Part shown: positions 41,201-64,000 of the stretch, piece by piece
How positions within the stretch are numbered: position 1 is the stretch's first letter
Layout: every line of letters starts with the position of its first letter
From: Dimorphilus gyrociliatus
Lineage: Eukaryota; Animalia; Annelida
Length of the DNA stretch: 64,000 nt
Reading direction: 5' to 3'
NCBI GenBank assembly: GCA_904063045.1
Contig: CAJFCJ010000015.1
Location: 1,309,034-1,373,033, forward strand
Position numbers and translations under genes: made by a program
The notes under the pieces: model-generated
Seen by the model: the letters and a program-made list of their open reading frames with translations, nothing else
Databases searched by the model: none
What the model was told of the DNA's origin: nothing

Positions 41201-44200
41201 CTATAAAGATAGAATATCAGGAAGACATCCACAACATTGCTCTAAATTAAAAAGAAAAACAGAAAGCGATGAGAGTGGTTATGCGGAAAGTCCAACAGTT
41301 GATCAAACATTGTTAGATGATGCTCGACCAGTTACTGTACAAATAGAATGCGATGAGATTGATAATATTCTTCAAGATACTAATAATATTGATGGGGATG
41401 ATTATTTTAATTCGTCAATTGAGACTATAAAAAAGCAAACAATCGAGTTTATTAAGAAAACGAAAACTCACACAAAAAGGATACAAAAGGATGATTCTAT
41501 CTATACAGATCTTTCATTTCAATCATCCAAGCAGGGTAGTAAAATATTTGGGAAAAGTAAATCATTTGATACTTGGGATTCCCATTCTTTCCAACATGCA
41601 GATACTGAAAAGGTTACTGAAAACTATTCACGCACGCAATACGACCATCTACACACTATTCCTAGTATAAGTGTTCAAAATAACCCTTATGATTTTATAT
41701 CGAGAAACTCTTGCAATGTTGGTGTAGAAACAACTGAAGATGAAAGAATCCCAAAAAATTCTTCGACTCAAACCATCAATGAAAGCCAAGAAGCCAATAG
41801 TTCTTGCGAACAAGCCCCAACAAGTCATTATGATTTTCATGAAAGAAAAAATACGAAAAAGAAAGATCAAATAAAAGATATACCCAAAAAAGGGACTAAA
41901 AATCAAGATCCCAATAGAAAAAATCTTATGAGGCTTATGCTTTCACAAGTCAGAGATTTAAAATCTCAACTTCAACCATATATCGCCCAGAGTGAAGAAC
42001 ACACATCCCGTTTATCTACCTCAAAAACTAAAAGAAAAGTAAGGACAAGAAATCCCACGGCTCAGCGAAGAAATATTTCATTGTCACCAGTAAATAGAGA
42101 TCGCAAGAGAAGGCTACCTAACTTGCCAGAAAATGTGTTAAGTCCAAGACGTTTACCTGCTGCTCCTTTTGATCATCCCCAAAGTACTTTTAAACCAATT
42201 CGTTTGCCTCCTCAACAATTTCAACCGATGCCACCAACGTGCATCATTGTTGCAAGTCCAGCAAGAGAGGAATGCGACGATATTTGCAATAGTTTATCTA
42301 GCTCTAGTTTTTCGTGTTCTTCCTTTTAGATTTTTAGCTATTAATTTATGTATGCGATTTTTCCTGGTTTGAATTTAAATAACTCTGTATTATTTATGGA
42401 ATAAATGAATTAACATGTCTAATTTTTTATTTAATTGAATCCTAGTCACGTGGCAATTATGATCGAGATGTCCAATACTTAAATATTAATTTCCTTGTTT
42501 TTTTCAGAGAACATTTCAGTATTTATCCGAACAAGAAGCAAGTATAGATATATTAAAAGATCTAGCTGGAGTAATTAAGAATCAAGTTAGTTCTCATGAT
42601 GGCATTTTGGTAGACGAAAGAGTATCAGATTTAGATAGAAAAGCAGTGGATTGCAAAGCTAAAATTGAAAAGAACTTGAACAATTATCAGAAAATTGTTG
42701 TTGAATATGATAGTGTTACAAAGAAACTGGAGGCTTTGTGTGCTTGGCTAAATGTTACTGAAGCAACCGTTGAGTCTATGGAACCTATGGGAAGTTCTCC
42801 AAATGATGTTCAACTAGTTCTTGATGCTCTGGAAGCTTTAGAAAACGAAATTATTGAGAAAAAACAAGAGGTCATTCAAGCTGGAGAATCTCCTATTCTA
42901 TTAGAATTAGGGTCTGCCGAGAGAACAATGATACAACAGCGTTTAGACAATCAGATCACCCAGCATTCTAATTTAATGATGAGCGTGGCAGATAAGAAAC
43001 GACAGTTACTAAATGCTCTTACTTACCTCAAAGGATTTCAAATAGAAATGAAATCTTTTGAGGATTGGTTGGTCAATTCAAGAAATTTGCTGTTTAAAGC
43101 CAAAAATCCTCAATCAGTTACTGAACAGGCTAATCTAATGAAAACTATTCTAGATGATATAAAAGATCATAAAATTCTAATCGAAAAATTACAGAGAGAC
43201 ACTGCTACTATAGCATCACTCTGTTCTGTAGAAAAGCGAGAAGATTTATTGAATCGCCTGCAGCAGATGAATGATCAGTATGATGAACTTAAGTGTTTAG
43301 CTGAAGAGAGTACTCTAGAAAACAAAAAATCTCTAAACAGCCTAAAGTCTATTTCTGGAGATGTTGAAACTGTTCATAAATGGTTAGAAGAAACAAGCTC
43401 TAATTTAAAACCCCTAGTAATAGAAAACATTAACGTAGGCTCTCTTGAATCTGATAAACAATATCATGATAATCTCCTTCGTACGGCTGATGAAATGATG
43501 ACGGCTCTAGATTCTATCAGAGACAGAGCTTCCGAAATTAATGGTTCTCAAAGATTCGAGATTCTTGAAAGCATTGGAAACGAATATGAGAATGTTGAAT
43601 ATCTAAAATCCACCTTAGAGCAGAGAAAAGCAGATATTGAACGGGCTTTGCATACTCACTCTCAAACAGAAGGCAAAATTACAGAAGTGCAACAAATTTT
43701 AATTGGCAAATTAAATGAGCTAACAAAACTTTCAAAAGCTCCCATAGGGCCCAGTCAAGAAAGTGCTCGTCGACTTCTTATTCAAGCAGAGAGACTGGAA
43801 AGGGAATTAAGAGATTATAAACCTCAAGTTGAGGAGACAGTTAGTTCTTTATCGGAATTTTCGAAGGGAGGACACCAACGAACAGAACAGGAAATGACAA
43901 AACTTGTTAAACTCAGTAGCGATGTAGAAAATGCTTGCGAACAGCTTCTGTCGAAATTTAAAAGTGCGGCAGCTCTACGAAGGACATATGCCGAACATAG
44001 AGGAGAGATTGAAACAGTTATCGATCAAATGTATCAACAAATTGAGGCTGTAGAATATGAAGGTGTTCCTGTTCACACAAAATTAGATCGATATGAAGCT
44101 GTCCTTGAAACAATAGCCGCAAAAGATCCACAATTAGGAATATTACAAGATCGAGGAGAGCAAATTAAAGCTGATGGAACAGTAGCTGATAAGGATGTAA

Positions 44201-47200
44201 TATCGTCTCAAATGGAGACCTTGCAAAAGAAAATGTCTGACTTGAAAAGTAATGCCGAGGAGAGGGGTAGATCTGTCCGATTTGTTATATCAGAAAGAGA
44301 AGAGAGAGATCAGGCTCTAACCAATGATATATCTTGGCTGGAGGACAAGTTAAAACGTTTACAAAAACAAACACCATTACCAATTGATTTGGCAGAGGCA
44401 ATTGCAGACAGAGAAATATTTGAAAAACGCGTCTCTGAAATAGAATATCGATTAGAAGATGTTGTAATAAAAGGGCAAACTCAAAAGAATCATTTTGAAA
44501 ACCTTAATGAAATGGTTCCTTTAGACATTCGTGATAAATTAGAAGAAATTGAAACCATTCAGAGAGAACTGACAGATAGTGTCGCTGAAAAAAGAAAATA
44601 TTTAGACAATGCATGTCTGTTACGAAAATCATTTGAGGAAATGTTTTCAAATATAAGGGATTGGGTTAGACAATCTGAAGCTATTGTTAGATCAACAAAC
44701 AGCACTTTAGAAATGGTAAGACCTGTGATTGGAAATCAAATTGTTAAAGAAGCTGAGATAAAGTCATTAGAAGAGGTTGCTAATCAACTGACTAGGTCAT
44801 TGGACCTCAACGATTCTCAAACTATTAATGAAATGGTAGAGGGTATGCGTGACAGAATCAAATCTGCTGTTGAAAGTGCAAAGGAAAAAGAAAGACAACT
44901 CGAGACTGAGAATAAATCTAATAAGACTTTCTCAGAACTACTAAACCAAGTAAAATCAACAAATAAAGATTGTGAAGATAAATTGAAAAAGTGTTCAACT
45001 CTCCATTCCCCATCGAGTGCAGAGCATGCTAAAAATCTGGCTTTGGAATGGCAAGAAGCAGTTGACTTTATAACTCAGTATTCGCCCCTGGTAGAACGGT
45101 TAAAGTCCTCCGCAGCTGAACTACGGTCACATTTAAGCGAAAATGAGCTTCAAGATTATTTATCAGCTATTAAAACTTGGAATGCAATTCTTAATCAAGT
45201 TGGAGAGGGTAAAGATGCAGCAGATCAGTTGGCAAGCGAATGGAAAGATTGGAACAGCGATACAGACGAAATAACTACTTCACTCAAAGATATTGATTCT
45301 CTTTTAACTACAGATATTCAAAATATAGACATGAATGAATTAACTGAACAGTTTTATAAGATAAAACAGGCAGAGAGAAATATTATTAGCATGGAGCCGA
45401 AAATACGAGATTTAAAAGTGAATGCTCAATCCTTGATAGGAAAATTCTCAGATAATAATGACTCCCAAGACATATTACAAAATAAACTGATGACTGTTTT
45501 GGCTTCTTACGAGGAAAATAAGGAAAACGTTAAAGAAAATTTGAATACACTGGAAGCTGCACTGGCGGAGAGAGACAATGTGAAAAAAGCATTGTATACG
45601 ATTAAGCAATCACTAGACACCATTCAATTGAAATTGCATCAACTATCGATATCAAGAGGTTTGAAGCCAAAAGATAAACTAGAACGACAGCAAACTTTGG
45701 AAAGTGAAATGAAAGAAAAGATGAAAAATTACCATGCTGCAGTAGACAGGACCAATATTCCCATGGAACTTGTAGAAGAAGCTAAGTCAATAGAAGAAAA
45801 ATACCTAGAAGTTTGTAAAGCTATTGAAAACACTCAAAACGATTTAAAAGATGTTCAAACTATTCAAAGTGAATTTGAAACACGATTTCAAAATGTGAAA
45901 CTATGGTTAGAGAATGCCAGTAAAACCTTATCACAGCCACCATCTGATGTGTTGAAATCAGTCGATGATGTTGATGAATTAATGTCAGAATTCCCTAAAT
46001 TTGAAATTGAGTTTGAAGAATTAAACGCAAAAGCTAATATTTTACTGAAGAGTGCTTCTCCACTCGCGAAGTTACCCTTAGAGAGGTCGATGGCAGATAT
46101 TAGTGACAAGTGGAAAGTCATAAAGTCAGCAGCTGAGAAGCAGCTAAAGGAAGCAAAGGAAACGAAAGATGCATATGAAACATCAGAAAATCTAGCAAAT
46201 GAGTTTGAAATATGGCTCGCGAATGTCGAAAGTTCAACAACGCCTTTTGAAGATTGGAAAAACTCAAACGAACTACAAAATAAGTCAGCTCAAGTAAAAA
46301 GAGCAATAGTAGAAGTCAGTAATCGCTCAGAAGATATAAACAAACTTCAACTTGCTCTTGAGCGGCTGCAAAGACAACCCCAATCGTTGGATGTTATAGA
46401 AAGGCTCCAGAATATTGACAAGAAATACTCTGTCTTACAAACTACTCTCCCTGAAAAATTGTCAGCTATGGAATCATGGAAGGACTGTCAGAAAGATTTA
46501 ACAAGTGTTACGAGTGCGTTTAACGATTTACAAAAAACAATGTCAAATTCTGTTTTAGAAGAAGCTCCTGCTGTTGAAAAACTTAAAGTGAAGCAACATC
46601 AATTGATAGAAGTAAATAAGCAGCTAGATGCACTTGCTATAGCACAAAGAAAAGAAAGAGATGCGAGAAGCAAAATGAGGTGTGATAATCCATCTCCGTT
46701 ATGTGGGCCACTCATAGCAGAACTAAAGGAACTGAAGGATCAACTTAACAATGATTGCCGATCCTTAAGAACACAAAGTACAAAAGAAACGGCTAAAGTG
46801 AGAGAGATTGATGATTTGAAAACGAAACTTGCTCAAGCAGAAGCAACCCTTCGAAAGAAAACTTCTGGTGGAGAGAAAGTGCCAAAATCTCTTGATGACA
46901 TTCGCAAAGAAATTGCTGAAACTCAAGTAAGTGTTTCATACTTTATCTCCCATTTGCTTACTCTACTGTTTGGTGTTTTTTTCTCGTGTGGCATGAAGCT
47001 TTCCATATCTTACTGTCTTCTAACTATTTTCGACGGCTTCACAAAGCACCTTATCTGTTGTCTTTGCACACTCTTATCTGCACGATATAACATTTTCTGT
47101 ACAGGAACTAACACGCCAAGTGAAGGCTCTAAAAGATCGTATTTCCACTGTTAGTAATAGAATGTTGTATTTGCCCTATGGTACTAGTGCAAATTCTACC

Positions 47201-50200
47201 CCTAGAGATACCCCATATTACATGAGTAGTGAACCTTCATCTCGCAGTAGTACTCCTAGTTTGACATCTCTTGATAAGGGCAAACTTGACTATAATCATT
47301 TATTCCCTATTAAGCCTTCATATGACTTTCATGTAATCAAAGACAACCCATTATCCCTTTCTGGTACGGTGTTTGAATTAACAGAGGAAATTAATAAATC
47401 ATTTGAAAATCAAATTTCCGAACCGATTATAACTATGAGCAAACTGGATGACCCTTCTTCAATAGAAAAAGTAAATAGTGCTAAAGATATTATTTTCGAC
47501 TCTTCTGATTTGCTACCAGCAAATAATGAATTTCTGATTATAGTGGAAACTTCTAATTCAATTGATAAAGTTATTTTTGAGCAAAACGATTCAAAGTGCT
47601 CTGAAATAATTCTCGACAATAAATATCAGGGAAAAAGTGATGTTAAAGGTAACAAATTACAAAAGGAGGATAAAAATACTGAAGGTCCCAGAGAACAGCA
47701 AAACACTCAAAACTCCATAAATAACGGATATAACTTAAAATGTACTCACTCTGTATCAACAACTCATGAACATTCTTTCTCTAAGGAGGAAAGTTTACAA
47801 CCGAAACACAAATTTAGTGAAGACTCAACTGATTCCGACGATTATGAAAGCTTCTCTTCAGATTCAATATATTTTAGTCCCAACAGAAGTAGAAGAAGTA
47901 CTTTAGAGGAATTAACTTTTAGTATTAATGACAATATTACTAAAAATTCACCATCTGGAGATGAAAATATAATGTATAAAGTTCAGAATAATTCATTAAT
48001 CTTATCTTCACCACTCGATTTGTCCGAGGACATTAGTTTCCTGCCGGAAGTAGAATTTAATAAAGCAAAAGAAGAAAACATCCCCGAAATAAGATGGACT
48101 AAAGCAGTAATGAGCTTTCCAATATATGATGCCGATGATGAGTATGAAGAGAGTAGTCGTTCGTCTAGTCAAAACACTCATCTCAGTAGTAAAAGCAGCC
48201 CAGAGCTGGCTGTTTCTGAAAAATGTTCGGATTTAGCAACAGAAGAATACAAAATTGATGATGTTGAAATTTTAAATGAAAATAGTTGCGATGAAAGCAA
48301 CGACGCAAGCGGCACAACAAATACTATAAATAAAATAATAGATTTAGAAGTATTTGAATCGCCTGTTCTAACTGATACTGGTTACTTTAGCGAAAAATCT
48401 TTAAATGAATATAATGAAAAAACTACATCAAGTTTAGTAGGTGGCACAGAAATATTAAATGAAATAACAATTGAAAAAATCCTAGAATCAACCAAACTCA
48501 ATACTACAAATGAAAAGGACGAACTAACAATGTATCCAATTCAAACTGTAGTAGCAAATAGTGAACCCAATGAAAATGAACTTGCAAATGCGAGACAAAT
48601 AATTACGGATATTAATATTGAGACAGACCTTGAATCATTAACATTTCAATTAGCTGAAAAGCAATCTAAACCACTGCCTAACATTGAACTATCAGTACAC
48701 AGTAGAGCCTATCTTGAATATCCACCCAAAGAAGATGGCTTGTTTCATAAACCGGATAAAGACAGTTTATATAAGGAGTTAGAATTGTTGCAAAAAGAAC
48801 TTATAAATCGACCACAATGCATAATTGAAGTAGAAATTGAAGAAAGTTTAGAATCGAAAGTAACAAATCCAGTAGAAGATGAAAATGCTTCCAGTAGACA
48901 ACTCTTTATTCCAGTATCAAGTATGCATATAGAACTAGACAAGGATCCGCTAAAAGCTGATTCTTCTCATGAATACCAATCAATTAAATGGAATACCAAA
49001 AATGACTCTAAAGAAAATATACTCCCGGAAGACCAAAATTATACTCTGGACAATCCAAGTCTAACTGATACAATAGAATTGTTTCGAAAACAAAACTTGA
49101 CTGATATTCAGGTAGCAGCTGCACTAACAATGGAAACATTTTTAGAATCAACAATGTTCAGTTTACATGAAGGTAAAAAAAATCCAGTGAAAGAATGCCC
49201 CATTGATATATTGACCTCTAAAGGTAATTCTGAAGAAAGTGCTTCAAGCGTCATGGTATGCTATACGCCTGATGACAAAAACTATGGCAATGAAATTGAA
49301 TTGATGCAAGCACTACCTAAATCACATATAGCAAATGAGCTGAGTATTGTATCAAATCTACAATCAACAGTATTTAAGACATTAGATAACAACGTAACTT
49401 TAAAAAAAGAACACACGCCATCAGATGAGTCGTATTTTGAACTTGATAACAAGAGTTATTTGAAACAGATGGAACCAATAAGAGAAAAGGACCTAACTGA
49501 TAAATATATATCGACCGAATTAATGATAGAAACAAATTTAGAATCAACAGTATTCCATTCAATGGAATATGAGAACAACTTACTAAAGGAAGCCGCCACT
49601 AGAAAAGGTGGAAAATATGACTTAGAGTATGTCTCAACCGATGAATGTTGTGTACCAACATTTGGTATAATAAAACCAACTGATGAAATTGCATTGATAC
49701 GTGGATATCATCAATTATTCAATACACATTTGACTACTGAAGTTACTGTTGTAATACATCTAGAATCAACAATGTTTAAAGCAGAGAGTAGAGACCATAC
49801 TAGAACTCAGAATTTCGCTAAGGAATTTTCGTCTATCGAAAGTGCCCTGGAAGAAAGTATATCAAGAGACGAATTGTACTTTACACAAGATAAAGACAGC
49901 TTCTCTGGTGACAGAGAACTAATACAAATCACCCATGAAACATCTGTTTTGTCAGAGCTTGCTGTTGAAACACATTTAGAACCAACATCATTTAATACAA
50001 TAGATATTTACAATGATAGTGCAACAAAATATCTGAAAAAAGCAGCTTTGACTGACGAAGGAAATTTTGAGAAAGACAAATCTAATGAATGCAACACAAC
50101 TAAAATTAAATTTGAACAAACTCAAAAGTTATCAAAAGCCAGCATAAAGGAATTAAAATTGTTACAAAAAGAACTTTCAAATCGACCACAATGCATAATT

Positions 50201-53200
50201 GAAGTAAACATTGCAGAAAGTTTAGAATCGAGAGTAACAAATCCAGTAGAAGATGAAAATGCTTCCAGTAGACAACTCTTTATTCCAGCATCATGTATGC
50301 ACATAGAACTAGAAAAGGAAGAGTTAACTGACGAGTCGTTTTTTACACCGGATAGTCAAAGTATAATTAATGCAATAGAATTATTGCAGAGGTACCTATC
50401 TGAAACTTGTACAATAACCAAAGTCTTAATCGAATCATACCTGGAGTCAACAAGTTTTAATCAAATGGACAATTTCAATAATCTATCACAAGAAGACTTG
50501 ACACACATTAAAAGTGAAGGTGAAGGCGGGAACTTATATCTAACACCTGATAAAGAAAGTATAGCGGGAGAATTGGCAGTATTACAAAAACAAGAGTTGA
50601 ATGAAGCAAGTACAATAAATGATTTAATAATTGAAACACATCTAGAATCAAGAACTATTAATTCAGTTGATAACGGGCATGCCAGTTCAGAATTGACAGA
50701 ATTTCATGTAAATGATAATTGTGATACTACAAAAAGTGAAGTGTTCCTTACTCAAGACGATATAAAGTTGGTTGAAGAAATCGAATTGCTTAAAAACGAA
50801 TTCTCATCTGGAAATAAAATAATTAATGAGTTAACATTAAAAGTTAATTTAGAAACAACTACATTTCCTTTACTGGAAACTGAAAGTAATACACGAAAAA
50901 ACTTCCTTCCTATTTCATTGACTGAAGACACTGATAGCGAAAAAGCTACTTCAGAGAATATATACCTCTCCTTTGAGTCGAAAAAACACGGCTCCGCTGA
51001 AGATTTATCATGGATTGAAGGTGACTTAGAAAGAGAAGAAAATATTGACCATGTTGAATATTTAATCCAAACTAGGCATGGAAGCATATCACAAACTGGA
51101 GATAACAAGACACAGATATATTGTAATCCCAACCCTAATTTTTTTAATTTTGAGCTAGCTATGCTGGAATGTTTGAATAAGAAAGATGTAATTGTAAAAG
51201 CTACAATAGAAACACATTTGGAATCTATGAGATTTGTATTATCTGACGAAGAAGTAGAAATGTTAAAGGAACGAATTCGAACTGTAACGAATAATAGTCA
51301 AATGACACGCATTGAAAAGCCGTCAAAGCAGGTAATAAAAATAATTTATTAGTATGACTTCAATAAAGTTTCCATTTTTTTCAGGAAAGTAAGGAACTTT
51401 TCGTACCAGTTTACTTCGTTTCAGAAATAAATTTGGAGTCAACCAAGTTTGAGGAAGTTAGAACAAATTCTCCTATCACAGCAGAAATACTTTGTAAGAA
51501 AAGTTTTCAGTCCCCTGATATTCACTCTGAAGATCATGAGTTTTCGAAACGATATCCAACCAGCATATTTTCTCCAAAAAAGAAAATAATTTTCAATGAA
51601 AAAATGCAGCTCTTTCCTGAATTGGGAAAAAAACAAGAAGTATTACGAATTGCCACAGAAACATACCTTCAATCAACAAAATTTAAGGATTCACAGAAAA
51701 ATTTAGAAGATACAATATCTTCAAGCTCTACAAAGGAAACGAAACAAGCATCACACAACAAAAATACAGAGAAGGAGATATCAAGAGAAACAAGCTTAGA
51801 ATCTACAAAGTTGAATCCCAGTGAAGAACATACATCTATGGAGAGTTTTAATAATAACCGTAAAGAGGATAATGAATTTTTTATGCCAGAGAGTACGATC
51901 ACTAATTTTAGACACGAAAAACTTAGAGCAGTAGAAATTACTACTATTCTTGAATCAGTATGTATAACTGCCCCTAAAAATGATGGTGACAGTGACATTA
52001 CGCCAAGGAACATAGATGAAAATATATCTCAATCTCCAACTAAAATCAGTCAAAATTTAAATACATTTACATCATCATATATTGTAAATATCGAAGACGT
52101 TTTAAAAGAGACTGAAAGGAATAACGTCATTTTCTTAATCCAAACAAAAACCAATCTTGAATCTAAACATTTGGCAGTTAATATTAATATGCACGAGGAG
52201 CATTTCTCACAAAATTTATACTTCATTCAAGAAGGTGCTACACCGAAACGAGAAAATGAGATATATCTCAAATCTAAAATATCGAATATAAGCAGCAAAG
52301 AAGAAATCATTGAAAGCATTAAGCCAGTTGGATACTTACTGCAGTTATCTTTAATTGTAACCCTTGAGCCAACAAGCTTCACGATCCATGATATTGCCAA
52401 TACCTCTTTTAAACAAAAACAAGATAAAGTTCCAGAATATGAATCATCAAAAAGTGACGATTTCGAGAAAAGCGAAGTCTTTTTCACGCCATCAATGTCG
52501 AACATAAAGAGCGAATTGGAATTTATTGAAAGTCAAACAAAAACCAAAAGTCTAATAGAAATAAACCAATTTTCCAATCTTGAACCAACATGTTTTAAGA
52601 TCAATAACATTGAATATGACTACTGCAAAAACATTCACAAAGATGTTGAAAAAGATGCCAAACAATTTTCGCCGAAAACAACAAACCTACATAACGAAAT
52701 TCAGTGTTTTCAAAGCGAGCCACAATCGAGAAACTTGATACAAATCTCAGCAATTACCAATCTTCAGTCAACTCATTTCCAGACGCACACCTCAAAACAC
52801 ACAAACGATGATCATCAAAAGTACAAGTCAACAGAACTCAAAGATTCCAATAAAATTAAAACATTTCCTTCAAATCCAGACATCCATTGCAAACATAACG
52901 ATTACATCAACGAAATAACGCACGTTACTCATCTTGAATCAAAAAATTTCAAGAAAAGTGAATATCATGATATCTCATTTGTTAAGAAAGGCTATGATGT
53001 TCTGGAAGATGAAACAACAGAAACAAAAAATTGTGAAGAAAGTGAAAGGTTCTTTATACCTCGATCATCAAGTGTATTAGACGAACTTGAATGTTTCGAA
53101 AGCGTGTCAAAAACGAGTAACTTAATCGCAGTATCGAATGCCACTAATCTCGAATCTATATATTTCAAGAGTAGTGATTTCGAAAGTGAAATCTCTGAAA

Positions 53201-56200
53201 CACCAAAAGATAAGGTTATAGAAAATGAATCAAAAGATACCGAAAGTCACACAGACGAGGAAACTTTCCTTACCCCAAAATCATCAAGTGAAATTAGCGA
53301 ATTACAATTCTATCAAAGCGACATAACAAATGAAATCGTCAGAGAAATAACGCACGTTACTCAACTTGAATCAACACATTTCAAGAAAAATGATATTGAT
53401 GATATCTCATTCGTTAAGAAAAGTAATGACGTTCCGGAAGCTGAAACAACAGAAACAAAAGATTGTGATGAAAGTGAAAGGTTCTTTACACCTCGATCAT
53501 CAAGTGTATTAGACGAACTTGAATGTTTCGAAATCGAGTCAAACACGTGTATCTTAATCGAAGCTTCAAATGCCACTAATCTCGAATCGACATATTTCAA
53601 AAAGGGTGACTTCGAGAGTGAAATCTCTGAAACAGCAAAAGATGAGGTTATAGAAAATGAATCAAAAGATACCGAAGGTCACACAGACGAGGAAACTTTC
53701 CTTACCCCAAAATCATCGAGTAGAATTAGCGAAATACAATTCTATCAAAGCGAGATAACAAATAAAAACGTCACAGAAATAACGCACGTTACTCATCTTG
53801 AATCAACACATTTCATGAAAAATGACATTGATGATATCTCATTCGTTAAGAAAAGTAATGATGTTCCGGTAGCAGAAACAACACAAACAAAAGACTGTGA
53901 AGAAAGTGAAAGGTTCTTTACACCTCGATCATCAAGTGTATTAGACGACGTTGAATATTTCGAAAGCGTGTCAAAAACGAGTAACTTAATCGCAATATCG
54001 AATGCCACTAATCTCGAATCGACAAATTTCAAAAAGGGTGACTTCGAGAGTGTAATCTCTGAAACACCAAAAGATGAGGTTATAGAAAATGATTCAAAAG
54101 ATACCGAAAGTCACACAGACAAGGAAACTTTCCTTACCCCAAAATCATCAAGTGAAATTTGTGAATTACAATTCTATCAAAGCGAGATAACAAATAAAAA
54201 CGTCACAGAAATAACGCACACGACTCAACTGGAATCAACACATTTCATGAAAAATGACATTGATGATATCTCATTCGTTAAGAAGAGCAATGATGTTCCA
54301 GAAGCAGAAACAACACAAACAAAAGACTGTGAAGAAAGTGAAAGGTTCTTTACACCTCGATCATCAAGTTCATTAGACGAATTTGAATGTTTCGAAAACG
54401 TGTCAAAAACGAGTACCTTAATCGAAGCATCGAATACTACCAATTTCGAATCGAAACACTTCAAGAAAAGTGATCACGAGAGTGAAATTTGTGAAATGTC
54501 AAAACATCAGGTTCAAGAAAATCAATCGAAAGAATCTGAAAATTACACAGAAAATGAAGCTTTCATTACCCCAAAATTATCAAGCGCAATAAGCGAATTA
54601 CAATTCTATCAAAGCGAGATAACAAATGAAATCGTCAAAGAAATAATGCACACTACTCAACTTGAATCAACATATTTCAAGAAAAATGACATTGATGACA
54701 TCTCATTCTCTAGTCAAGACAATTATGTTTTGAAAGCTGAAACCACAAATACAAAACATTCAGATGAAAAGGAAGCATTTCTATCTCCTCGAGCATCAAG
54801 TCATTTTGAGAGTGAAAGCTCCAAAACACCAAAAAATGAGCTTCAAGAAAAGGAATCGAAACAAAGCGAAGGTTACACAGAAGATGAAACATTCCTCACC
54901 TCAAAATCATCAACTGAAATTAGCGAATTACAATTCTTTAAAAGCGAGATAATAACTCAAAACGTCACAGAAATAACGCACACGACTCAACTGGAATCAA
55001 CACATTTCATGAAAAATGACATTGATGATATCTCATTCGTTAAGAAGAGCAATGATGTTCCAGAAGCAGAAACAACACAAACAAAAGACTGTGAAGAAAG
55101 TGAAAGGTTCTTTACACCTCGATCATCAAGTTCATTAGACGAATTTGAATGTTTCGAAAACGTGTCAAAAACGAGTACCTTAATCGAAGCATCGAATACT
55201 ACCAATTTCGAATCGAAACACTTCAAGAAAAGTGATCACGAGAGTGAAATTTGTGAAATGTCAAAACATCAGGTTCAAGAAAATCAATCGAAAGAATCTG
55301 AAAATTACACAGAAAATGAAGCTTTCATTACCCCAAAATTATCAAGCGCAATAAGCGAATTACAATTCTATCAAAGCGACATAACAAATGAAATCGTCAG
55401 AGAAATAACGCACGTTACTCAACTTGAATCAACACATTTCAAGAAAAATGATATTGATGATATCTCATTCGTTAAGAAAAGTAATGACGTTCCGGAAGCT
55501 GAAACAACAGAAACAAAAGATTGTGATGAAAGTGAAAGGTTCTTTACACCTCGATCATCAAGTGTATTAGACGAACTTGAATGTTTCGAAATCGAGTCAA
55601 ACACATGTATCTTAATCGAAGCTTCGAATGTCACTAATCTCGAATCGACATATTTCAAAAAGGGTGACTTCGAGACTGAAATTGTTGAAACATCAAAAGA
55701 TGAGGTTATAGAAAATGATTCAAAAGATAATGAAGGTCACCGAGAAGAGGAAACTTTCCTTACCCCAAAATCATCAAGTGAAATTTGTGAATTACAATTC
55801 TATCAAAGCCAGAAAACAACTGAAAACGTCACAGAAATAACCCATACAACTCAACTGGAATCAACACATTTCAGGAAAATTGACATTGATGATATATCAT
55901 TTGTTAATAAAAGTAATGATGTTCTGGCAGCTGAAACAATAGAAACAAAAGATTGTGAAGAGGTTGAAAGTTTCTTTACATCTGGATCATCAAATGTATT
56001 AGACGACGTTGAATATTTTGAAAGCGACTCAAACACGTGTATCTTAATCGAAGCTTCGAATGCCACTAATCTCGAATCGACAAATTTCAAGAAGGGTGAC
56101 TTCGAGAGTATAATCTCTGAAACACCAAAAGATGAGGTTATAGAAAATGAATCAAAAGATACCGAAAGTCACACAGACGAGGAAACTTTCCTTACCCCAA

Positions 56201-59200
56201 AATCATCAAGTGAAATTAGCGAATTACAATTCTATCAAAGCGACATAACAAATGAAATCGTCAGAGAAATAACGCACGTTACTCAACTTGAATCAACACA
56301 TTTCAAGAAAAATGATATTGATGATATCTCATTCGTTACGAAAAGTAATGACGTTCCGGAAGCTGAAACAACAGAAACAAAAGATTGTGATGAAAGTGAA
56401 AGGTTCTTTACACCTCGATCATCAAGTGTATTAGACGACGTTGAATATTTTGAAAGCGACTCAAACACGTGTATCTTAATCGAAGCTTCGAATGCCACTA
56501 ATCTCGAATCGACAAATTTAAAAAAGGGTGACTTAGAGAGTGTAATCTCTGAAACACCAAAAGATGAGGTTATAGAAAACGAATCAAAAGCTACCGAGGG
56601 AATAGAAAGGGAAGATAAGGAAGAGACCAAAGATTCCTTTGTACCTAGAACATCAAATATCAGTGAAGAAATAAAAAAAGACTTAAGCAAAATAAAACAT
56701 GAAAACGTAACGGAACTTATACTTTCAACGAATCTTGAGTCACCATCCTTCATAATTTGTGAAATTGAGAAGAACAATGTTTATAAAGAGATGTTCAATG
56801 ACAAAGAAGAAAAGAAAGAAAACCAGAATTTCCCTTCACTTACAGTGTTCAATGATGAATTAGAATGCAAACAATACTTGGAAGATAGCGAAAATCTTCT
56901 TCAAATTATGATTACTACGCAAATGGAGTCCACAGTTTTTGAAGCAGAAGATAATATAAACCACATAGAAGAGCAACGACACGATATTCCTTTAGATGAG
57001 AAAAGTATTTCTGAAGACGATGAAATCTGCAAAGATTCGTCATATATTACTCCAGAGAATGATTCTTTCAATGATGAATTAGAATGCAAGGAATACTTGG
57101 AAGACGGGGAAAGTCTTCTTCAAATTATAGTCACTACGCAAATGGAGTCCACAGTTTTTAATACGGGAGATAGTAAAACCCACATTGAAGAGCAACAACA
57201 AGATATTCCTTCAGAGGACAAAAGAATTCCAGAAGACGATGAAATCGCCAAAGATTCGTCATATATTAATCCACAAAAAGATTCTTTCAATGATGATTTA
57301 GAATGCAAGGAATTCTTGGAAGATGGCGAAAGTCTGCTTCAAATTATGGTCACTACGAAAATGGAGCCCACAGTTTTTAATACGGGAGATAGTAAAAGCC
57401 ACATTGAAGAGCAACAACAAGATATTCCTTCAGATGAAAAAAGCATTCATAAAGACGATGAAATCGCCAAAGATTCGTCATATATTACTCCACAAAAAGA
57501 TTCTTTCAATGATGATTTAGAATGCAAGGAATTCTTGGAAGATGGCGAAAGTCTACTTCAAATTATGGTCGCTACGCAAATGGAGTCCACGGTTTTTGAA
57601 GCAGAAGATAATATAAACCACATTGCAGAACAACAACACGATATTCCTTTAGATGAGAAAAGCATTCATAAAGACGATGAAATCGCCAATGAAGCGTCAT
57701 ATATTACTCCAGATAAAGATTCTTTAAATGATGAATTTGAATGGAAGGAATACTTGGAAGATGGCGAAAGTCCTCTTCAAATTATGGTCACTACGCAAAT
57801 GGAGTCCACAGTTTTTGAAGCAGAAGATAATATAAACCACATTGCAGAACAACAACACGATATTCCTTTAGATGAGAAAAGCATTCATAAAGACGATGAA
57901 ATCGCCAATGAAGCGTCATATATTACTCCAGATAAAGATTCTTTAAATGATGAATTTGAATGGAAGGAATACTTGGAAGATGGCGAAAGTCCTCTTCAAA
58001 TTATGGTCACTACGCAAATGGAGTCCACAGTTTTTGAAGCAGAAGACAATAAAAACCACTTTGAAGAACAACAACACGTTATTCCTTTAGATAAAAAAAG
58101 CATTCATAAAGACGATGAAATCGCCAATGAAGCGTCATATATTACTCCAGATAAAGATTCTTTCAATGATGAATTAGAATGTAAGGAATACTTGGAAGAT
58201 GGCGAAAGTCTTCTCCAAATGATAGTCGTTACGCAACTGGAGTCCACAGTTTTTGAAGCAGAAGATAGTAAAAACCACATTGCCGAACAACAGCACGATA
58301 TTCCTTTAGATGAGAAAAGCATTCATAAAGACGATGAAATCGCCAATGAAGCGTCATATATTACTCCAGATAAAGATTCTTTGAATGATGAGTTAGAATG
58401 TAAGGAATACTTGGCAGATGGCGAAAATCTTCTTCAAATGATGGTCGTTACGCAACTGGAGTCCACAGTTTTTGAAGCAGAAGATAGTAAAAACCACATT
58501 GCCGAACAACAGCACGATATTCCTTTAGATGAGAAAAGCATTCATAAAGACGATGAAATCGCCAATGAAGCGTCATATATTTCTCCAGATAAAGATTCTT
58601 TAAATGATGAATTAGAATGCAAGGAATACTTGGATGACGGCGAAAGTCTTCTTCAAATTATGGTCACTACGCAAATGGAGTCCACAGTTTTTGAAGCAGA
58701 AGATAATATAAACCACATTGCAGAACAACAACACGATATTCCTTTAGATGAAAAAAGCATTCATAAAGACGATGAAATCGCCAATGAAGCGTCATATATT
58801 ACTCCAGATAAAGATTCTTTGAATGATGAGTTAGAATGTAAGGAATACTTGGCAGATGGCGAAAATCTTCTTCAAATGATGGTCGTTACGCAACTGGAGT
58901 CCACAGTTTTTGAAGCAGAAGATAGTAAAAACCACATTGCCGAACAACAGCACGATATTCCTTTAGATGAAAAAAGCATTCATAAAGACGATGATTTCAC
59001 GAAAGATTCATCATATATTACTCCACAAAAAGATTCTTTCAATGATGATTTAGAATGCAAGGAATACTTGGAAGACGGCGAAAGTCTTCTTCAAATTATG
59101 GTCACTACGCAAATGGAGTCCACAGTTTTTGAAGCAGAAGATAATATAAACCACATTGCAGAACAACATCACGATATTCCTTTAGATGAAAAAAGCATTC

Positions 59201-62200
59201 ATAAAGACGATGAAATCGCCAATGAAGCGTCATATGTTACTCCAGATAAAGATTCTTTGAATGATGAATTAGAATGTAAGGAATACTTGGCAGATGGCGA
59301 TAATCTTCTTCAAATGATAGTCGTTACGCAACTGGAGTCCACAGTTTTTGAAGCAGAAGATAATATAAACCACATTGAAGAACAACGACACGATATTCCT
59401 TTAGATGAGAAAAGCATTCATAAAGACGGTGAAATCGCCAATGAAGCGTCATATATTTCTCCAGATAAAGATTCTTTAAATGATGAATTTGAATGGAAGG
59501 AATACTTGGAAGATGGCGAAAGTCCTCTTCAAATTATGGTCACTACGCAAATGGAGTCCACAGTTTTTGAAGCAGAAGACAATAAAAACCACTTTGAAGA
59601 ACAACAACACGATATTCCTTTAGATAAAAAAAGCATTCATAAAGACGATGAAATCGCCAATGAAGCGTCATATATTACTCCAGATAAAGATTCTTTCAAT
59701 GATGAATTAGAATGTAAGGAATACTTGGAAGATGGCGAAAGTCTTCTTCAAATGATAGTCGTTACGCAACTGGAGTCCACAGTTTTTGAAGCAGAAGATA
59801 GTAAAAACCACATTGCCGAACAACAGCACGATATTCCTTTAGATGAAAAAAGCATTCATAAAGACGATGATTTCACGAAAGATTCATCATATATTACGCC
59901 ACAAAAAGATTCTTTCAATGATGATTTAGAATGCAAGGAATACTTGGAAGACGGCGAAAGTCTTCTTCAAATTATGGTCACTACGCAAATGGAGTCCACA
60001 GTTTTTGAAGCAGAAGATAATATAAACCACATTGCAGAACAACAACACGATATTCCTTTAGATGAGAAAAGCATTCATAAAGACGATGAAATCGCCAATG
60101 AAGCGTCATATATTTCTCCAGATAAAGATTCTTTAAATGATGAATTAGAATGCAAGGAATACTTGGATGACGGCGAAAGTCTTCTTCAAATTATGGTCAC
60201 TACGCAAATGGAGTCCACAGTTTTTGAAGCAGAAGATAATATAAACCACATTGCAGAACAACAACACGATATTCCTTTAGATGAGAAAAGCATTCATAAA
60301 GACGATGAAATCGCCAATGAAGCGTCATATATTACTCCAGATAAAGATTCTTTCAATGATGAATTAGAATGTAAGGAATACTTGGAAGATGGCGAAAGTC
60401 TTCTTCAAATGATAGTCGTTACGCAACTGGAGTCCACAGTTTTTGAAGCAGAAGATAGTAAAAACCACATTGCCGAACAACAGCACGATATTCCTTTAGA
60501 TGAAAAAAGCATTCATAAAGACGATGATTTCACGAAAGATTCATCATATATTACTCCACAAAAAGATTCTTTCAATGATGATTTAGAATGCAAGGAATAC
60601 TTGGAAGACGGCGAAAGTCTTCTTCAAATTATGGTCACTACGCAAATGGAGTCCACAGTTTTTGAAGCAGAAGATAATATAAACCACATTGCAGAACAAC
60701 ATCACGATATTCCTTTAGATGAAAAAAGCATTCATAAAGACGATGAAATCGCCAATGAAGCGTCATATGTTACTCCAGATAAAGATTCTTTGAATGATGA
60801 ATTAGAATGTAAGGAATACTTGGCAGATGGCGATAATCTTCTTCAAATGATAGTCGTTACGCAACTGGAGTCCACAGTTTTTGAAGCAGAAGATAATATA
60901 AACCACATTGAAGAACAACGACACGATATTCCTTTAGATGAGAAAAGCATTCATAAAGACGGTGAAATCGCCAATGAAGCGTCATATATTTCTCCAGATA
61001 AAGATTCTTTAAATGATGAATTTGAATGGAAGGAATACTTGGAAGATGGCGAAAGTCCTCTTCAAATTATGGTCACTACGCAAATGGAGTCCACAGTTTT
61101 TGAAGCAGAAGACAATAAAAACCACTTTGAAGAACAACAACACGATATTCCTTTAGATAAAAAAAGCATTCATAAAGACGATGAAATCGCCAATGAAGCG
61201 TCATATATTACTCCAGATAAAGATTCTTTCAATGATGAATTAGAATGTAAGGAATACTTGGAAGATGGCGAAAGTCTTCTTCAAATGATAGTCGTTACGC
61301 AACTGGAGTCCACAGTTTTTGAAGCAGAAGATAGTAAAAACCACATTGCCGAACAACAGCACGATATTCCTTTAGATGAAAAAAGCATTCATAAAGACGA
61401 TGATTTCACGAAAGATTCATCATATATTACGCCACAAAAAGATTCTTTCAATGATGATTTAGAATGCAAGGAATACTTGGAAGACGGCGAAAGTCTTCTT
61501 CAAATTATGGTCACTACGCAAATGGAGTCCACAGTTTTTGAAGCAGAAGATAATATAAACCACATTGCAGAACAACAACACGATATTCCTTTAGATGAGA
61601 AAAGCATTCATAAAGACGATGAAATCGCCAATGAAGCGTCATATATTTCTCCAGATAAAGATTCTTTAAATGATGAATTAGAATGCAAGGAATACTTGGA
61701 TGACGGCGAAAGTCTTCTTCAAATTATGGTCACTACGCAAATGGAGTCCACAGTTTTTGAAGCAGAAGATAATATAAACCACATTGCAGAACAACAACAC
61801 GATATTCCTTTAGATGAGAAAAGCATTCATAAAGACGATGAAATCGCCAATGAAGCGTCATATATTACTCCAGATAAAGATTCTTTCAATGATGAATTAG
61901 AATGTAAGGAATACTTGGAAGATGGCGAAAGTCTTCTTCAAATGATAGTCGTTACGCAACTGGAGTCCACAGTTTTTGAAGCAGAAGATAGTAAAAACCA
62001 CATTGCCGAACAACAGCACGATATTCCTTTAGATGAAAAAAGCATTCATAAAGACGATGATTTCACGAAAGATTCATCATATATTACGCCACAAAAAGAT
62101 TCTTTCAATGATGATTTAGAATGCAAGGAATACTTGGAAGACGGCGAAAGTCTTCTTCAAATTATGGTCACTACGCAAATGGAGTCCACAGTTTTTGAAG

Positions 62201-63912
62201 CAGAAGATAATATAAACCACATTGCAGAACAACAACACGATATTCCTGTAAATGAAAAAAGTAGAATAAAAGAATACTTGGAAGATGGCGAAAGTCTTCT
62301 TCAAATTGTTTTATCCACGCAATTAGAAACCACCTGTTTTCATGAGGAAAAGAATGTTGAACATAACATTCCAAGAAGCAAAATGGAAAATGATGTAGAA
62401 AAAATTCATAGTGTTTTCGAGGAAAATAGAGAGAATTTTGTAGGAGCGATATATTTAGAGTTTTTTAGTGAAACACCTAATATTGAAGTGAAAAAATGTT
62501 TTTTAAGCTCTCCAGTAATCTCAACGATTTCGGATTTATCGCTTTATAAAGCAAGTATTTTGCCGTCTTCTCCTTTCGTTTCTGAATGCGCTGAATTTAC
62601 AACTGGATGCGATAATTTCTTCTGTCTACAAGATACATCAATGAATTTAGAAAGTCAACTGAATTTTTATGACTCTTCCTGCATTGTTAGAGAGAATGAC
62701 TTTGACGAATCTTATGCTAGTGATTCAATTAATGAGCCGGAACAGACGTTTTCAGAATTTTATGATCGAATTTCTCAGGCAAGAGGTTTTTTTGGCGTAT
62801 ATTTTCGAAGAAAAAACATTTCTAAGGGACCTTCATATGAAATTACTGAAATAATGGAAGACGCAAAGGAATATAATGTAAACAACGAGTCAGAATCATC
62901 TTCAGTGGATTCAGAAGGACCTGATATTGAATCAAAAGGTGCAGACAGTTCAAAAGTTGAGGGGGATGTAAATGAACAAAATATGAAATTCGGAGATCTT
63001 CAAGAAAATATGCTTGAAAAAACCAAAAAACCTACTTTTGATATTGAACATGCTAGTGCTCAAATCAATAAAGAGAACAATCTGTCTAACATTAGTCAAA
63101 CAAAAGTTGAAAGAAGCTCCACAAATTTATCTTCTGAGAACCAGGAATCAGGACTAGTCGAATTGAACGAGAACGAATATGACGAAACTAAGCTTGAATC
63201 TGCCTTCAAGCCATTTAACACAGCACATTTCATCCCTAGTGTACTGTATTCGAAACTACTAGAAATTAAATGTTTAGCTGATAAATTTTCGCAAGGCGCA
63301 AATAGTCAAGAAACAGATTGTACTGAACTTTGTGCTAACAGAGAAAAGTTATTTGCGCCGGAAAATGATATTTCTGAAAATGCACGCAAGATTGAGAAAG
63401 ATAATTCGAAAAAGCTTAATGTTTCCACTAAAAGTCATGAAGAAAATAAACTTTCTGAATCTGGCCAAAAAATTAAAGAAGTAACGGAAATTCATAGTTT
63501 CTCTCCAATATTCACAGACAAAGAAACTGAAATTAATCTATATAAAAGTGTCGAATCAAGTATTGATATTGAAAATTTAATCTATAATAGTACTATTAAC
63601 AATTCTGATAAATTAAGTACTATCAGGTCACAGGACACACAATCTTATCAGATAGATAGCTCTGATGTATCACCCATAGAAATATCTGTACATTCAACTG
63701 AAAATGCGAGATCCTCTGGAACTGATCCTACTTTCTATGAGCAAAAAGAGAACATCAGAGACTTTCTACAGCAATCAAATGCCTTAAAAGTAACAAAAGA
63801 GTGCCCTAAAAGCATAGTCACAGCTGAAATATCTAATTTCGCATTGGATCAAAGTGAAACTGATATGGAAGTAGAAGAAATTATGGGTGAAGTAGGAAAT
63901 AAGAACGAGAAG
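14292..63912 (+). CDS. SYNE1: Giant nesprin-1 / MSP-300-like protein (CH-CH + spectrin repeats + giant acidic repeat insert), probably continues beyond the window
   Basis: CH1 EQERVQKKTFTNWVN...GRRMQRIHYVTNV...PAIVLGLIWTVILYFQIEE and CH2 DFGPSWRDGHAFNAMIH...LLDPEDVDVDRPDEKSIMTYVAQF, plus nesprin-1-like EFLSNLPQWKDKHEKLNEAANFLIET. Phase-consistent exon chain: 14292-14454, 17726-18060, 18111-18319, 19619-19919, 20491-20628, 21068-21916, 22336-23913, 24144-26069, 26125-29676, 30085-32655, 32717-33685, 33912-35940, 35992-36230, 36278-36409, 36484-36648, 36717-38450, 38626-39615, 39678-40457, 42508-46926, 47105-51331, 51385-63912. These sum to 39,834 nt (13,278 codons). No KASH domain (TM + PPPX) in the window. 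Confidence 0.9.
16313..16385 (+). CDS. Alternative first coding exon of the nesprin gene (MVDIVCKYGKYYRSLGRLHVDYDP)
   Basis: ATG with an upstream in-frame stop, 24 codons + G, then a perfect GTAAGT donor in phase 1. Joining to 17726 gives D-EQERVQKKTF, the canonical CH1 entry. Confidence 0.65.
19111..19549 (+). CDS. Intronic alternative terminal exon (or nested ORF from ATG 19103), basic/Ser-rich
   Basis: 150-codon same-strand ORF inside nesprin intron 18320-19618. The first AG after a pyrimidine tract (19109-19110) is in phase with the phase-2 donor at 18320. Stop at 19549, AATAAA at 19594-19599. Confidence 0.6.
21983..22018 (+). CDS. Candidate 36-nt in-frame cassette microexon (IEYKKFLRKWSI)
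   Basis: CTTTAG acceptor and GTAAGT donor, phase 0-0, inside a phase-0 intron. Confidence 0.4.
29805..29945 (+). CDS. Spectrin-repeat exon (VLEREIHDRSKKVEGLK...RLQQLVQIR), probably alternative
   Basis: TAG acceptor in phase 0, a helix-B-like sequence continuing KKERVLELK, and a GTTGGT donor (the same donor sequence is used at 26070). Confidence 0.65.
40583..40850 (+). other. Two short phase-0 exons with GTAAG donors: 40583-40612 (YDCMSVFINR) and 40818-40850 (MKNGAHRLSLT), candidate internal first exons or microexon
   Basis: CAG|TAT...CGG|GTAAGA and ATG AAG...ACG|GTAAGT. Both are in phase with the acceptors at 41145 and 42508. Confidence 0.45.
41145..42329 (+). CDS. Intronic alternative terminal exon of the nesprin gene (~394 aa disordered tail)
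   Basis: 399-codon same-strand ORF in intron 40458-42507 with a T9-ACAG acceptor in phase 0 (matching donor 40458). Stop at 42329, AATAAA at 42400-42405. Confidence 0.75.
   Translation, partial: LSSNNTRPLRRILPNVNNAYKDRISGRHPQHCSKLKRKTESDESGYAESPTVDQTLLDDARPVTVQIECDEIDNILQDTNNIDGDDYFNSSIETIKKQTIEFIKKTKTHTKRIQKDDSIYTDLSFQSSKQGSKIFGKSKSFDTWDSHSFQHADTEKVTENYSRTQYDHLHTIPSISVQNNPYDFISRNSCNVGVETTEDERIPKNSSTQTINESQEANSSCEQAPTSHYDFHERKNTKKKDQIKDIPKKGTKNQDPNRKNLMRLMLSQVRDLKSQLQPYIAQSEEHTSRLSTSKTKRKVRTRNPTAQRRNISLSPVNRDRKRRLPNLPENVLSPRRLPAAPFDHPQSTFKPIRLPPQQFQPMPPTCIIVASPAREECDDICNSLSSSSFSCSSF
47105..51331 (+). CDS. Giant exon A (4,227 nt, 1,409 codons), acidic, non-spectrin, with degenerate xTxLESTxF modules
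   Basis: CTGTACAG acceptor in phase 0, continuous ORF, CAG|GTAATA donor. Confidence 0.8.
48773..50312 (+). repeat. Dispersed 166-bp in-frame duplication (48773-48938 and 50147-50312)
   Basis: Both copies encode KELxLLQKELxNRPQCIIEVxIxESLESxVTNPVEDENASSRQLFIPxSxMHIEL, offset 1,374 bp. Confidence 0.9.
51385..63912 (+). CDS. Giant exon B (12,528 nt, 4,176 codons) containing two coding tandem arrays
   Basis: T7-CAG acceptor in phase 0 and an uninterrupted ORF. A likely donor AAG|GTAGAA lies at 63913. Otherwise the frame stops at 63919-63921. Confidence 0.8.
52912..56600 (+). repeat. Coding tandem array, 432-bp (144-aa) dimeric unit, about 8.5 copies
   Basis: Unit starts (EIT/EIM) at 52912, 53344, 53776, 54208, 54640, 54970, 55402, 55834, 56266. 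The 54640 unit is 330 bp (102-bp in-frame deletion). Confidence 0.93.
56848..62340 (+). repeat. Coding tandem array, 219-bp (73-aa) unit, 24 full copies plus a truncated 25th
   Basis: Consensus FNDELECKEYLEDGESLLQIMVTTQMESTVFEAEDNINHIAEQQHDIPLDEKSIHKDDEIANEASYITPDKDS. Unit starts are 56848 + 219n, checked at several n up to 62104. Confidence 0.96.
59038..62103 (+). repeat. Higher-order repeat: 7 x 219 bp = 1,533 bp block present twice
   Basis: The variant order A-B-C-D-E-F-G at 59038-60570 repeats at 60571-62103. Confidence 0.9.
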
Positions 63913-64000
63913 GTAGAATAAATGAAGGAAACTGATTAGCTATAAATAATTTATTGATTTACCATAAAGCAAAGATTTATTGTTTTCTTTGATAGGTTTT

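Follow-up and report, generated by a model that had tools for sequence, protein, structure and literature searches.

A predicted giant KASH protein of the annelid Dimorphilus gyrociliatus carries a long insert of orphan tandem repeats in its spectrin rod

Why would one of the most compact animal genomes known carry a conspicuous 14 kb of repeat-coding DNA within a single gene? The published genome of Dimorphilus gyrociliatus is highly compacted, at 73.8 Mb in ~350 scaffolds and with a median intron of 66 bp (PMC7854359). The question is raised by a window of 64,000 nucleotides (nt), which is the whole stretch of DNA that we analyzed: positions 1,309,034 to 1,373,033 of the forward strand of contig CAJFCJ010000015.1 (assembly GCA_904063045.1). 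Near its 3' end are two giant exons, A and B, which seem to belong to a nesprin gene. A sequence-only reading of this DNA had proposed that one module of ~72 amino acids (aa) and of unrecognized family underlies both exons, that the copies become younger from 5' to 3', and that the core of the module is under selection as a binding motif while the linkers drift. Our analysis suggests, with a probability of roughly 0.55, that these exons encode a 5,585-aa lineage-restricted insert in the nesprin rod, which would be acidic, probably disordered, and would display ~60 putative docking motifs multivalently. Giant cytoskeletal proteins with a private insert of tandem repeats are a familiar phenomenon; the repeat unit itself appears, from the comparisons described below, to be an orphan.

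Positions below are those of the window, and features are on the + strand, unless stated otherwise. As read from the sequence, the exon upstream of the insert ends at 46926 (CAA/GTAAGT). Giant exon A (47105..51331; 1,409 codons, phase 0-0, without a Pfam family) lies between an acceptor AG at 47103-47104 and a donor GT at 51332. A phase-0 intron of just 53 nt (51332..51384, with GT at 51332 and AG at 51383-51384) joins it, in frame with the open reading frame (ORF) of exon B, to giant exon B (51385..63912; 4,176 codons, phase 0-0), whose donor is at 63913 (AAG/GTAGAA). Together, the two exons keep one frame open for 5,585 codons in DNA of 35% GC. The opening residues of exon B run up to an L-E-S-T-K-F, which shows that the 53-nt intron splits a repeat unit; the partial unit there scores 8.3 bits. 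Each exon also has a part that is not repetitive: exon A begins with a Ser/acid-rich head of 414 aa (47105..48346), and exon B ends with an acidic tail of 516 aa (62365..63912). Neither the head nor the tail has a profile match or a Pfam family. Because both exons are in phase 0-0 and are multiples of three, either or both could be skipped in frame, and judging from this structure they may be optional, isoform-specific exons. There are also antisense ORFs inside the repeat exons, of 164 aa at 56283-56777 (-) and 126 aa at 50752-51132 (-). Most likely these are not genes but arise from the sequence being biased and repetitive.

The repeat strings that had been quoted for this DNA are all present in the translations of two ORFs (47120-51352 for exon A and 51433-63921 for exon B). 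We built a hidden Markov model (HMM) from the near-identical tandem units of exon B only and ran it against exon A. This gave 10 domains with at least 3 bits, including 7 with at least 8 bits, the two best at 24.6 and at 25.3 bits. When we shuffled exon A 500 times with its composition preserved, the top score was 7.7 bits, so no shuffled domain reached 8 bits. The exon A matches are thus significant, and the proposal of a single ~72-aa module in both giant exons holds. Also, an HMM from the 73-aa units alone finds both halves of the 144-aa unit (both types of unit are from exon B). Each unit has an N-terminal [FY]-hydrophobic-T-P element in an acidic context and a C-terminal hydrophobic stretch that ends in L-E-S-T-x-F; the remainder varies. 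Our final profile has 59 columns and was obtained in four iterations, with an alignment of 44 non-identical units. Between 48347 and 62364, it identifies ~62 copies, of which exon A contains 13 and exon B contains 49. Among the oldest copies, the median spacing is 217.5 nt (~72 aa), with a range of 132-567 nt.

The module is confined to this gene. The iterated profile found no copy in the 12 upstream spectrin exons and nothing at 8 bits or above in ~20,900 aa of flanking forward-frame ORF pieces. We then searched the genome assembly (77.9 Mb in 349 contigs, with very short introns) in all six frames with the profile. All 60 matches were in this gene, at 1357383-1371397 of the contig (48350-62364 of the window). 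Similarly, a whole-genome search with the DNA repeat unit matched this gene only. We rejected a satellite or transposon origin, as well as copies elsewhere, since the whole-genome protein, DNA, and profile searches match this gene alone. The units have a common origin and are found in no other gene of this genome.

To what family does the module belong? The sequence-only reading had called it unrecognized, and this was borne out: there was no real match in Pfam and none in the Protein Data Bank (PDB) or among 1.84 billion representative proteins, and word searches were blank. Exons A and B were searched separately, each as its own query. Exon B (51433-63918) had apparent matches to the Pfam families Mitofissin (7.9e-31) and CHU_C (3.4e-24), with no individually significant stretch for either. 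We consider these to be false positives, because weak scores were summed over many near-identical repeats. A profile search of the PDB sequences gave no matches at E ≤ 1. Searching the 1.84 billion representative proteins with the 59-column profile gave no matches at E ≤ 0.001, although in a library of this size the profile needs several copies, or one well-conserved copy, to reach significance. Two word searches, one with residues 400-1400 of exon A and one with 350 aa from this exon, gave no matches; the latter did not return even fragments from the same species. In the ESM Atlas, the best score was 0.86, which is under the reliability line of 0.9. Finally, in the literature we found no description of an Msp300 or nesprin repeat of this kind.

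The host gene was identified by its domains. The + strand reads as a single very large gene with short introns from ~17.7 kb onward, as far as the window extends. It has two CH-domain exons (Pfam CH; 17713-18093 at 1.2e-22 and 19605-19970 at 1.4e-19), followed by the exons of a spectrin-repeat rod (21182..46926). Pfam's Spectrin and/or Spectrin_SYNE1 (the spectrin repeats of nesprin-1) matched in 11 of the 12 ORF-exons in this region (21182-47154). Spectrin repeats resume 3' of the window (L009 1533-8451), and 9 kb past the window's end, on the same strand, there is a KASH domain (PF10541; 34 bits, which is above the cut-off; 1382002-1382169 of the contig). This is the sole KASH match in the genome. 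The order of domains is two CH, the spectrin rod, the insert, further spectrin repeats, and KASH; we infer that these are all in one transcript. Because of the paired CH domains, the rod that matches Spectrin and Spectrin_SYNE1, and the KASH domain on the same strand, we predict that the gene encodes a giant KASH protein that belongs with nesprin-1/2, Msp300, and ANC-1 and is their orthologue.

A few exons of the gene could not be assigned as readily. The ORF-exon at 39726-40493 has only a weak match to Pfam's FTA4, well below the cut-off, and the ORF-exons at 41130-42329 and at L009 186-1274 lack any Pfam family. These three may be diverged spectrin repeats or more non-spectrin inserts.

Is the insert itself derived from spectrin repeats? 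A spectrin repeat would be recognized by a profile match and by a three-helix bundle of ~106 aa. Exons A and B have no match to Spectrin or Spectrin_SYNE1 at E ≤ 0.01, and structural models of the units (see below) lack a helical bundle, so we rejected a spectrin-derived origin. The predicted protein shares with nesprin-1/2 and Msp300 its pair of CH domains, its spectrin rod (with Spectrin_SYNE1), and its KASH domain at the C terminus. The rods of nesprin-1/2 and Msp300 have over 50 spectrin-like repeats (PMC8139857). In contrast, the rod described here contains a 5,585-aa non-spectrin insert without a match in the representative library.

The closest known analogue is ANC-1, the C. elegans orthologue of nesprin-1/2, which has six tandem repeats of 903 residues that are predicted to be helical and spectrin-like (PMC8139857). 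These repeats are required for nuclear and endoplasmic reticulum (ER) anchorage, and in C. elegans the conserved end domains matter less for organelle positioning than this lineage-specific region does (PMC8139857). Both proteins have a lineage-specific, near-identical tandem array in the rod of a giant CH...KASH protein. However, ANC-1's repeat is helical and 903 aa long, while the repeat described here has ~72 aa, is strongly acidic, and lacks a confident fold. We found no sign of a relationship between the two: the module's profile matched nothing in the representative library, and the units are not predicted to be helical. Titin and sallimus offer another parallel. Their PEVK regions are encoded by giant exons with low-complexity, charged tandem repeats, lie within a modular rod, and evolve by local amplification, and the D. 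gyrociliatus insert resembles them in each of these respects. On the other hand, the insert is rich in E, D, S, T, and N instead of P, E, V, and K, and it has the distinct, conserved L-E-S-T-x-F motif. None of our searches revealed a similarity in sequence to such proteins.

The units of the insert fall into age classes. The oldest (48347..52974, as identified from the profile and from DNA identity) are the 13 diverged copies in exon A, together with six full copies and some remnants at the 5' end of exon B. Apart from one duplicated pair, the old units that start between 48347 and 52627 are 0.61-0.69 identical to their best partners at the DNA level, which is the background for such an alignment. 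The next class comprises two arrays of a 432-nt unit, as identified by Tandem Repeats Finder (TRF): the first at 52912..54708 (4.2 copies, 89% matches) and the second at 54808..56597 (4.1 copies). The 144-aa unit that they encode consists of two diverged modules, a-type and b-type, which are ~25-30% identical to each other. The first array was duplicated as a block to give the second, as identities of 0.89-0.93 at lags of 2058, 2490, and 2922 indicate; several units are identical between the two arrays, and their junction contains a truncated unit. The last class is an array of ~25 units of 219 nt (73 aa) at 56791..62261, with degenerate units at its 5' edge (TRF reports 56848-62261, 24.7 copies, and 91% matches). 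Units of the 432-nt arrays are 0.89-1.0 identical to their best partners, and those of the 219-nt array 0.9-1.0. Within the 432-nt arrays, the mean synonymous difference (pS) is 0.145 for a-type units and 0.195 for b-type units; for the 219-nt units it is 0.119. These values agree with the order of the tiers from DNA identity, so the 5'-to-3' age classes are real but stepwise.

The gradient that had been claimed thus stands as an order of age classes, in three steps. It is not smooth: the edges of the arrays are degenerate, and an old-type unit (56599..56775; 35.1 bits by the profile, with a best DNA identity of 0.65) lies between the arrays. Degenerate edges are expected for arrays that are homogenized from the inside. 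Examples include the units at 52783 (DNA identity of 0.74) and 56791 (0.80) and the 3'-most unit, which is truncated and diverged (62188..62364; 28.5 bits across profile columns 21-56, DNA identity of 0.70).

Two other features of the old region are worth describing. Repeat finding identified a 173-nt internal duplication in exon A, whose arms (48773..48945 and 50147..50319) are 92% identical. The units of the duplicated pair, at 48707 and 50078, are 0.84 identical. This duplication is far younger than the old units that adjoin it, and it lies apart from the tandem arrays. Also, near amino acids 135-265 of exon B, where the full-length profile matches nothing, there are remnant L-E-S-x-x-[IL] motifs at 51949 and 52156, which are probably decayed units.

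Within the 219-nt array, there is a higher-order repeat of 7 units (1,533 nt): identity is 0.965 at a lag of 1533 as compared to ~0.91 at other multiples of 219. The last two consecutive higher-order copies (59038..62103) are 100% identical, with a sliding identity of 1.0 at a lag of 1533 across 59038-60351. These copies are either the youngest part of the insert, from a very recent duplication, or an effect of assembly. If the identical blocks arose during assembly, then the copy number and the youngest tier would be overstated. Long tandem arrays are often mis-assembled, and exact identity over 2 x 1,533 nt would fit with such an error; but the other higher-order copies differ by 4-15%, a pattern that fits real divergence, so we consider an artifact to be improbable. 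The module and the older tiers would stand regardless.

The insert thus grew as one ~72-aa unit was amplified in tandem several times over. An old series of single units diverged until their similarity at the DNA level was gone. A two-unit block of 432 nt was then amplified and afterward duplicated as a block, and last a single unit of 219 nt was amplified; it seems still to be copied in blocks of 7 units. The copying was presumably by unequal crossing-over or replication slippage.

Which parts of the unit have been kept during this history? In 19 old copies, the Leu of L-E-S-T-x-F is present in all 19, the Glu in 16 (with Gln in the other 3), the Ser in 15 (with Pro in 3), the Thr in 13, and the Phe in 14. 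The next most conserved positions are the aromatic pair, the T-P, and a few Glu or Leu positions, for ~10 conserved columns overall. We also examined the codons of 21 old instances of the motif, which were identified by a pattern search in the stretch with old copies. Five different codons (TTA, CTT, CTA, TTG, and CTG) are used for the Leu, while the Ser always has a TCN codon and the Pro variants are CCA. Because the motif has been kept while DNA identity has fallen to background and the Leu codons have turned over, the old copies seem to have been under purifying selection, at the amino-acid level, for a long period. A frame that stays open for 5,585 codons at 35% GC points to amino-acid-level selection as well. 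The motif itself is plainly retained as amino acids. Repeat finding had picked out the motif-coding DNA, so we considered a constraint on the nucleotides, but we rejected this as the Leu codons vary freely. Only the motif's Ser has a codon in excess, TCA (12/17, P = 6e-4), a bias that fits descent inside the TCN codon box. We also considered the V-T-Q-L and T-T-Q-M sequences of some units as "TQT"-type binding sites for LC8. We rejected this idea because the old copies have N, H, Y, or S where the Gln would be.

If the insert is indeed a disordered display of docking motifs, then it would lengthen the rod as a long flexible spacer and would offer a putative partner ~60 copies of a short linear motif, chiefly L-E-S-T-x-F. 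The many copies would give the nesprin a multivalent attachment. The disorder, the docking, and the multivalency are what we suppose the insert's function to be, and several observations weigh against them. First, exons A and B were called from DNA alone, and their presence in the mature mRNA is a prediction. Second, the libraries that we searched did not return this protein itself or any fragment of it, so they evidently lack this locus, and this weakens the blank results. The libraries may also lack the giant proteins of the closest relatives (Trilobodrilus and Dinophilus). The remaining points concern the fold of the units and the constraint on the recent ones.

As for the fold, we ran AlphaFold2 on the 144-aa unit (a-type plus b-type), with an alignment of 40 two-unit rows. 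The mean predicted local distance difference test (pLDDT) was 51.2, the predicted template modeling (pTM) score was 0.11, and there was almost no secondary structure; pLDDT peaked at 61-66 over the L-E-S-T-x-F region. For three 73-aa units, the pLDDT was 31.8 and the pTM score was 0.20. So, in these models, the units have no confident fold. However, the three-unit model has strands, at very low confidence (pLDDT below 45), on both conserved segments, and the alignment is shallow and contains copies from the same gene only, so low confidence does not prove disorder. The amino-acid composition of the insert is distinctive: exon B has 23.6% D and E, 0.1% Trp, and a net charge of -14.8 per 100 aa, as compared to a net charge of -3.8 per 100 aa and 1.6% Trp for the spectrin exons. 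Given this composition and the models, the insert is probably an unfolded, intrinsically disordered acidic chain.

Because the alignment was so shallow, we also considered a small fold. Each unit might be an autonomous domain of ~45 aa, with a helix and a strand or hairpin, strung like beads on a string, and AlphaFold2 would fail on such an orphan. The hydrophobic periodicity of the two conserved segments in each unit would suit this idea, as would the strands on these segments and the pLDDT peak over L-E-S-T-x-F. But pTM scores of 0.11-0.20, without a single residue at a pLDDT of 90, are not what a folded domain would lead us to expect; nor are the very high charge, the very low content of aromatic residues and Trp, the variable spacing of the old copies (132-567 nt), or the conservation of just ~10 columns across them. 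We consider it unlikely that the units are folded domains, and we favor a disordered chain.

Turning to the recent units, the ratio of nonsynonymous to synonymous substitution rates (dN/dS) within the young arrays is 0.71 for the 219-nt units, 0.78 for a-type units, and 0.50 for b-type units. The 13 motif columns are more constrained than the rest of the unit in b-type units (0.15 versus 0.56), but not in the 219-nt units (0.94 versus 0.68) or in a-type units (1.16 versus 0.76). Since dN/dS is 0.5-0.8 and two of the three families show no added constraint on the motif, the recent expansion could be largely near-neutral. So, the earlier idea that the core is selected while the linkers drift fits the old copies, in which L-E-S-T-x-F is kept and the Leu codons vary; for the recent units, dN/dS does not demonstrate it.

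These ratios raise the possibility that the young arrays (~3,500 aa) are a neutral, runaway expansion that is tolerated within an optional exon, and that only the old copies are functional, if any are. The 100% identity of two higher-order copies is compatible with this, and so is the phasing of the exons, which would allow them to be skipped in frame. On the other hand, the motif columns of the b-type units are strongly constrained, all of the units, including the old ones, keep the frame open across 5,585 codons at 35% GC, and the genome is otherwise highly compacted (PMC7854359). We are doubtful of a neutral expansion, without dismissing it, and we prefer the view that the insert presents docking motifs. 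If the insert is merely tolerated, then it is a case of ordinary tandem-repeat growth in a giant exon.

What might the motifs bind? The N-terminal element of the unit, an acidic tract followed by [FY]-hydrophobic-T-P, has some resemblance to the phospho-FFAT (a pair of phenylalanines within an acidic tract) motif, as defined in PMC7705450. FFAT motifs have the consensus E-F-F-D-A-x-E, and the phospho-FFAT of STARD3 binds the MSP domains of VAP proteins when position 4 is phosphorylated (PMC7705450, PMC7610837). If the element were a motif of this type, the insert would be a multivalent array for docking VAP, and it would tie the nesprin to the ER. We counted 41 instances of the pattern [FY][FYILVMC][ST]P in the insert and none in the 7,499 aa of the spectrin part, as compared to a mean of 0.66 in shuffled sequences. 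In the element, position 2 is aromatic, position 3 is hydrophobic or aromatic, position 4 is Ser or Thr, and position 5 is Pro; it so resembles positions 2-5 of STARD3's core, which has Pro at positions 5 and 6 (PMC7705450). Its context would be acidic, cytosolic, and probably unstructured, and on average 2.5 of the 6 residues upstream are acidic. Also, this genome has MSP-domain genes, and ANC-1 localizes to the ER and positions it (PMC8139857).

However, the element departs from the core consensus, which is acidic at positions 1 and 7. It has S, R, or T at the first of these positions and K or S at the other, never D or E. Positions 6 and 7 are often basic. The element is also poorly kept in the old copies, which retain L-E-S-T-x-F instead. 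The likeness is one of pattern, and specificity is low, as ~10% of human proteins score as having a phospho-FFAT (PMC7705450). In a limited part of the literature that mentions both FFAT and nesprins, we found no link between them. Among the alternatives that we considered, this docking array seems to us the least probable. A broader idea is that either the ~40-60 proline-directed [FY]-hydrophobic-T-P sites act as phospho-FFAT-like ligands of VAP or else L-E-S-T-x-F is a new linear motif, and that the nesprin is a high-avidity cross-linker between the nucleus and the ER or other organelles that can be switched by phosphorylation. This is a long shot, but if true, it would provide a molecular handle on the KASH- and CH-independent organelle positioning that has been reported for ANC-1.

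Giant KASH proteins position nuclei and other organelles, and this insert would be a second case, unrelated to ANC-1, of a private repeat array inside a nesprin rod. If L-E-S-T-x-F does dock a partner, then the 73-aa unit would be a simple reagent for finding proteins that bind the nesprin rod.

The window also includes neighbors of the nesprin gene on its 5' side. These are an exon of a PP2C phosphatase at 1571-2323 (-; Pfam, 6.7e-49) and a RING-finger protein at 10133-11125 (+; zf-RING_11/zf-RING_2).

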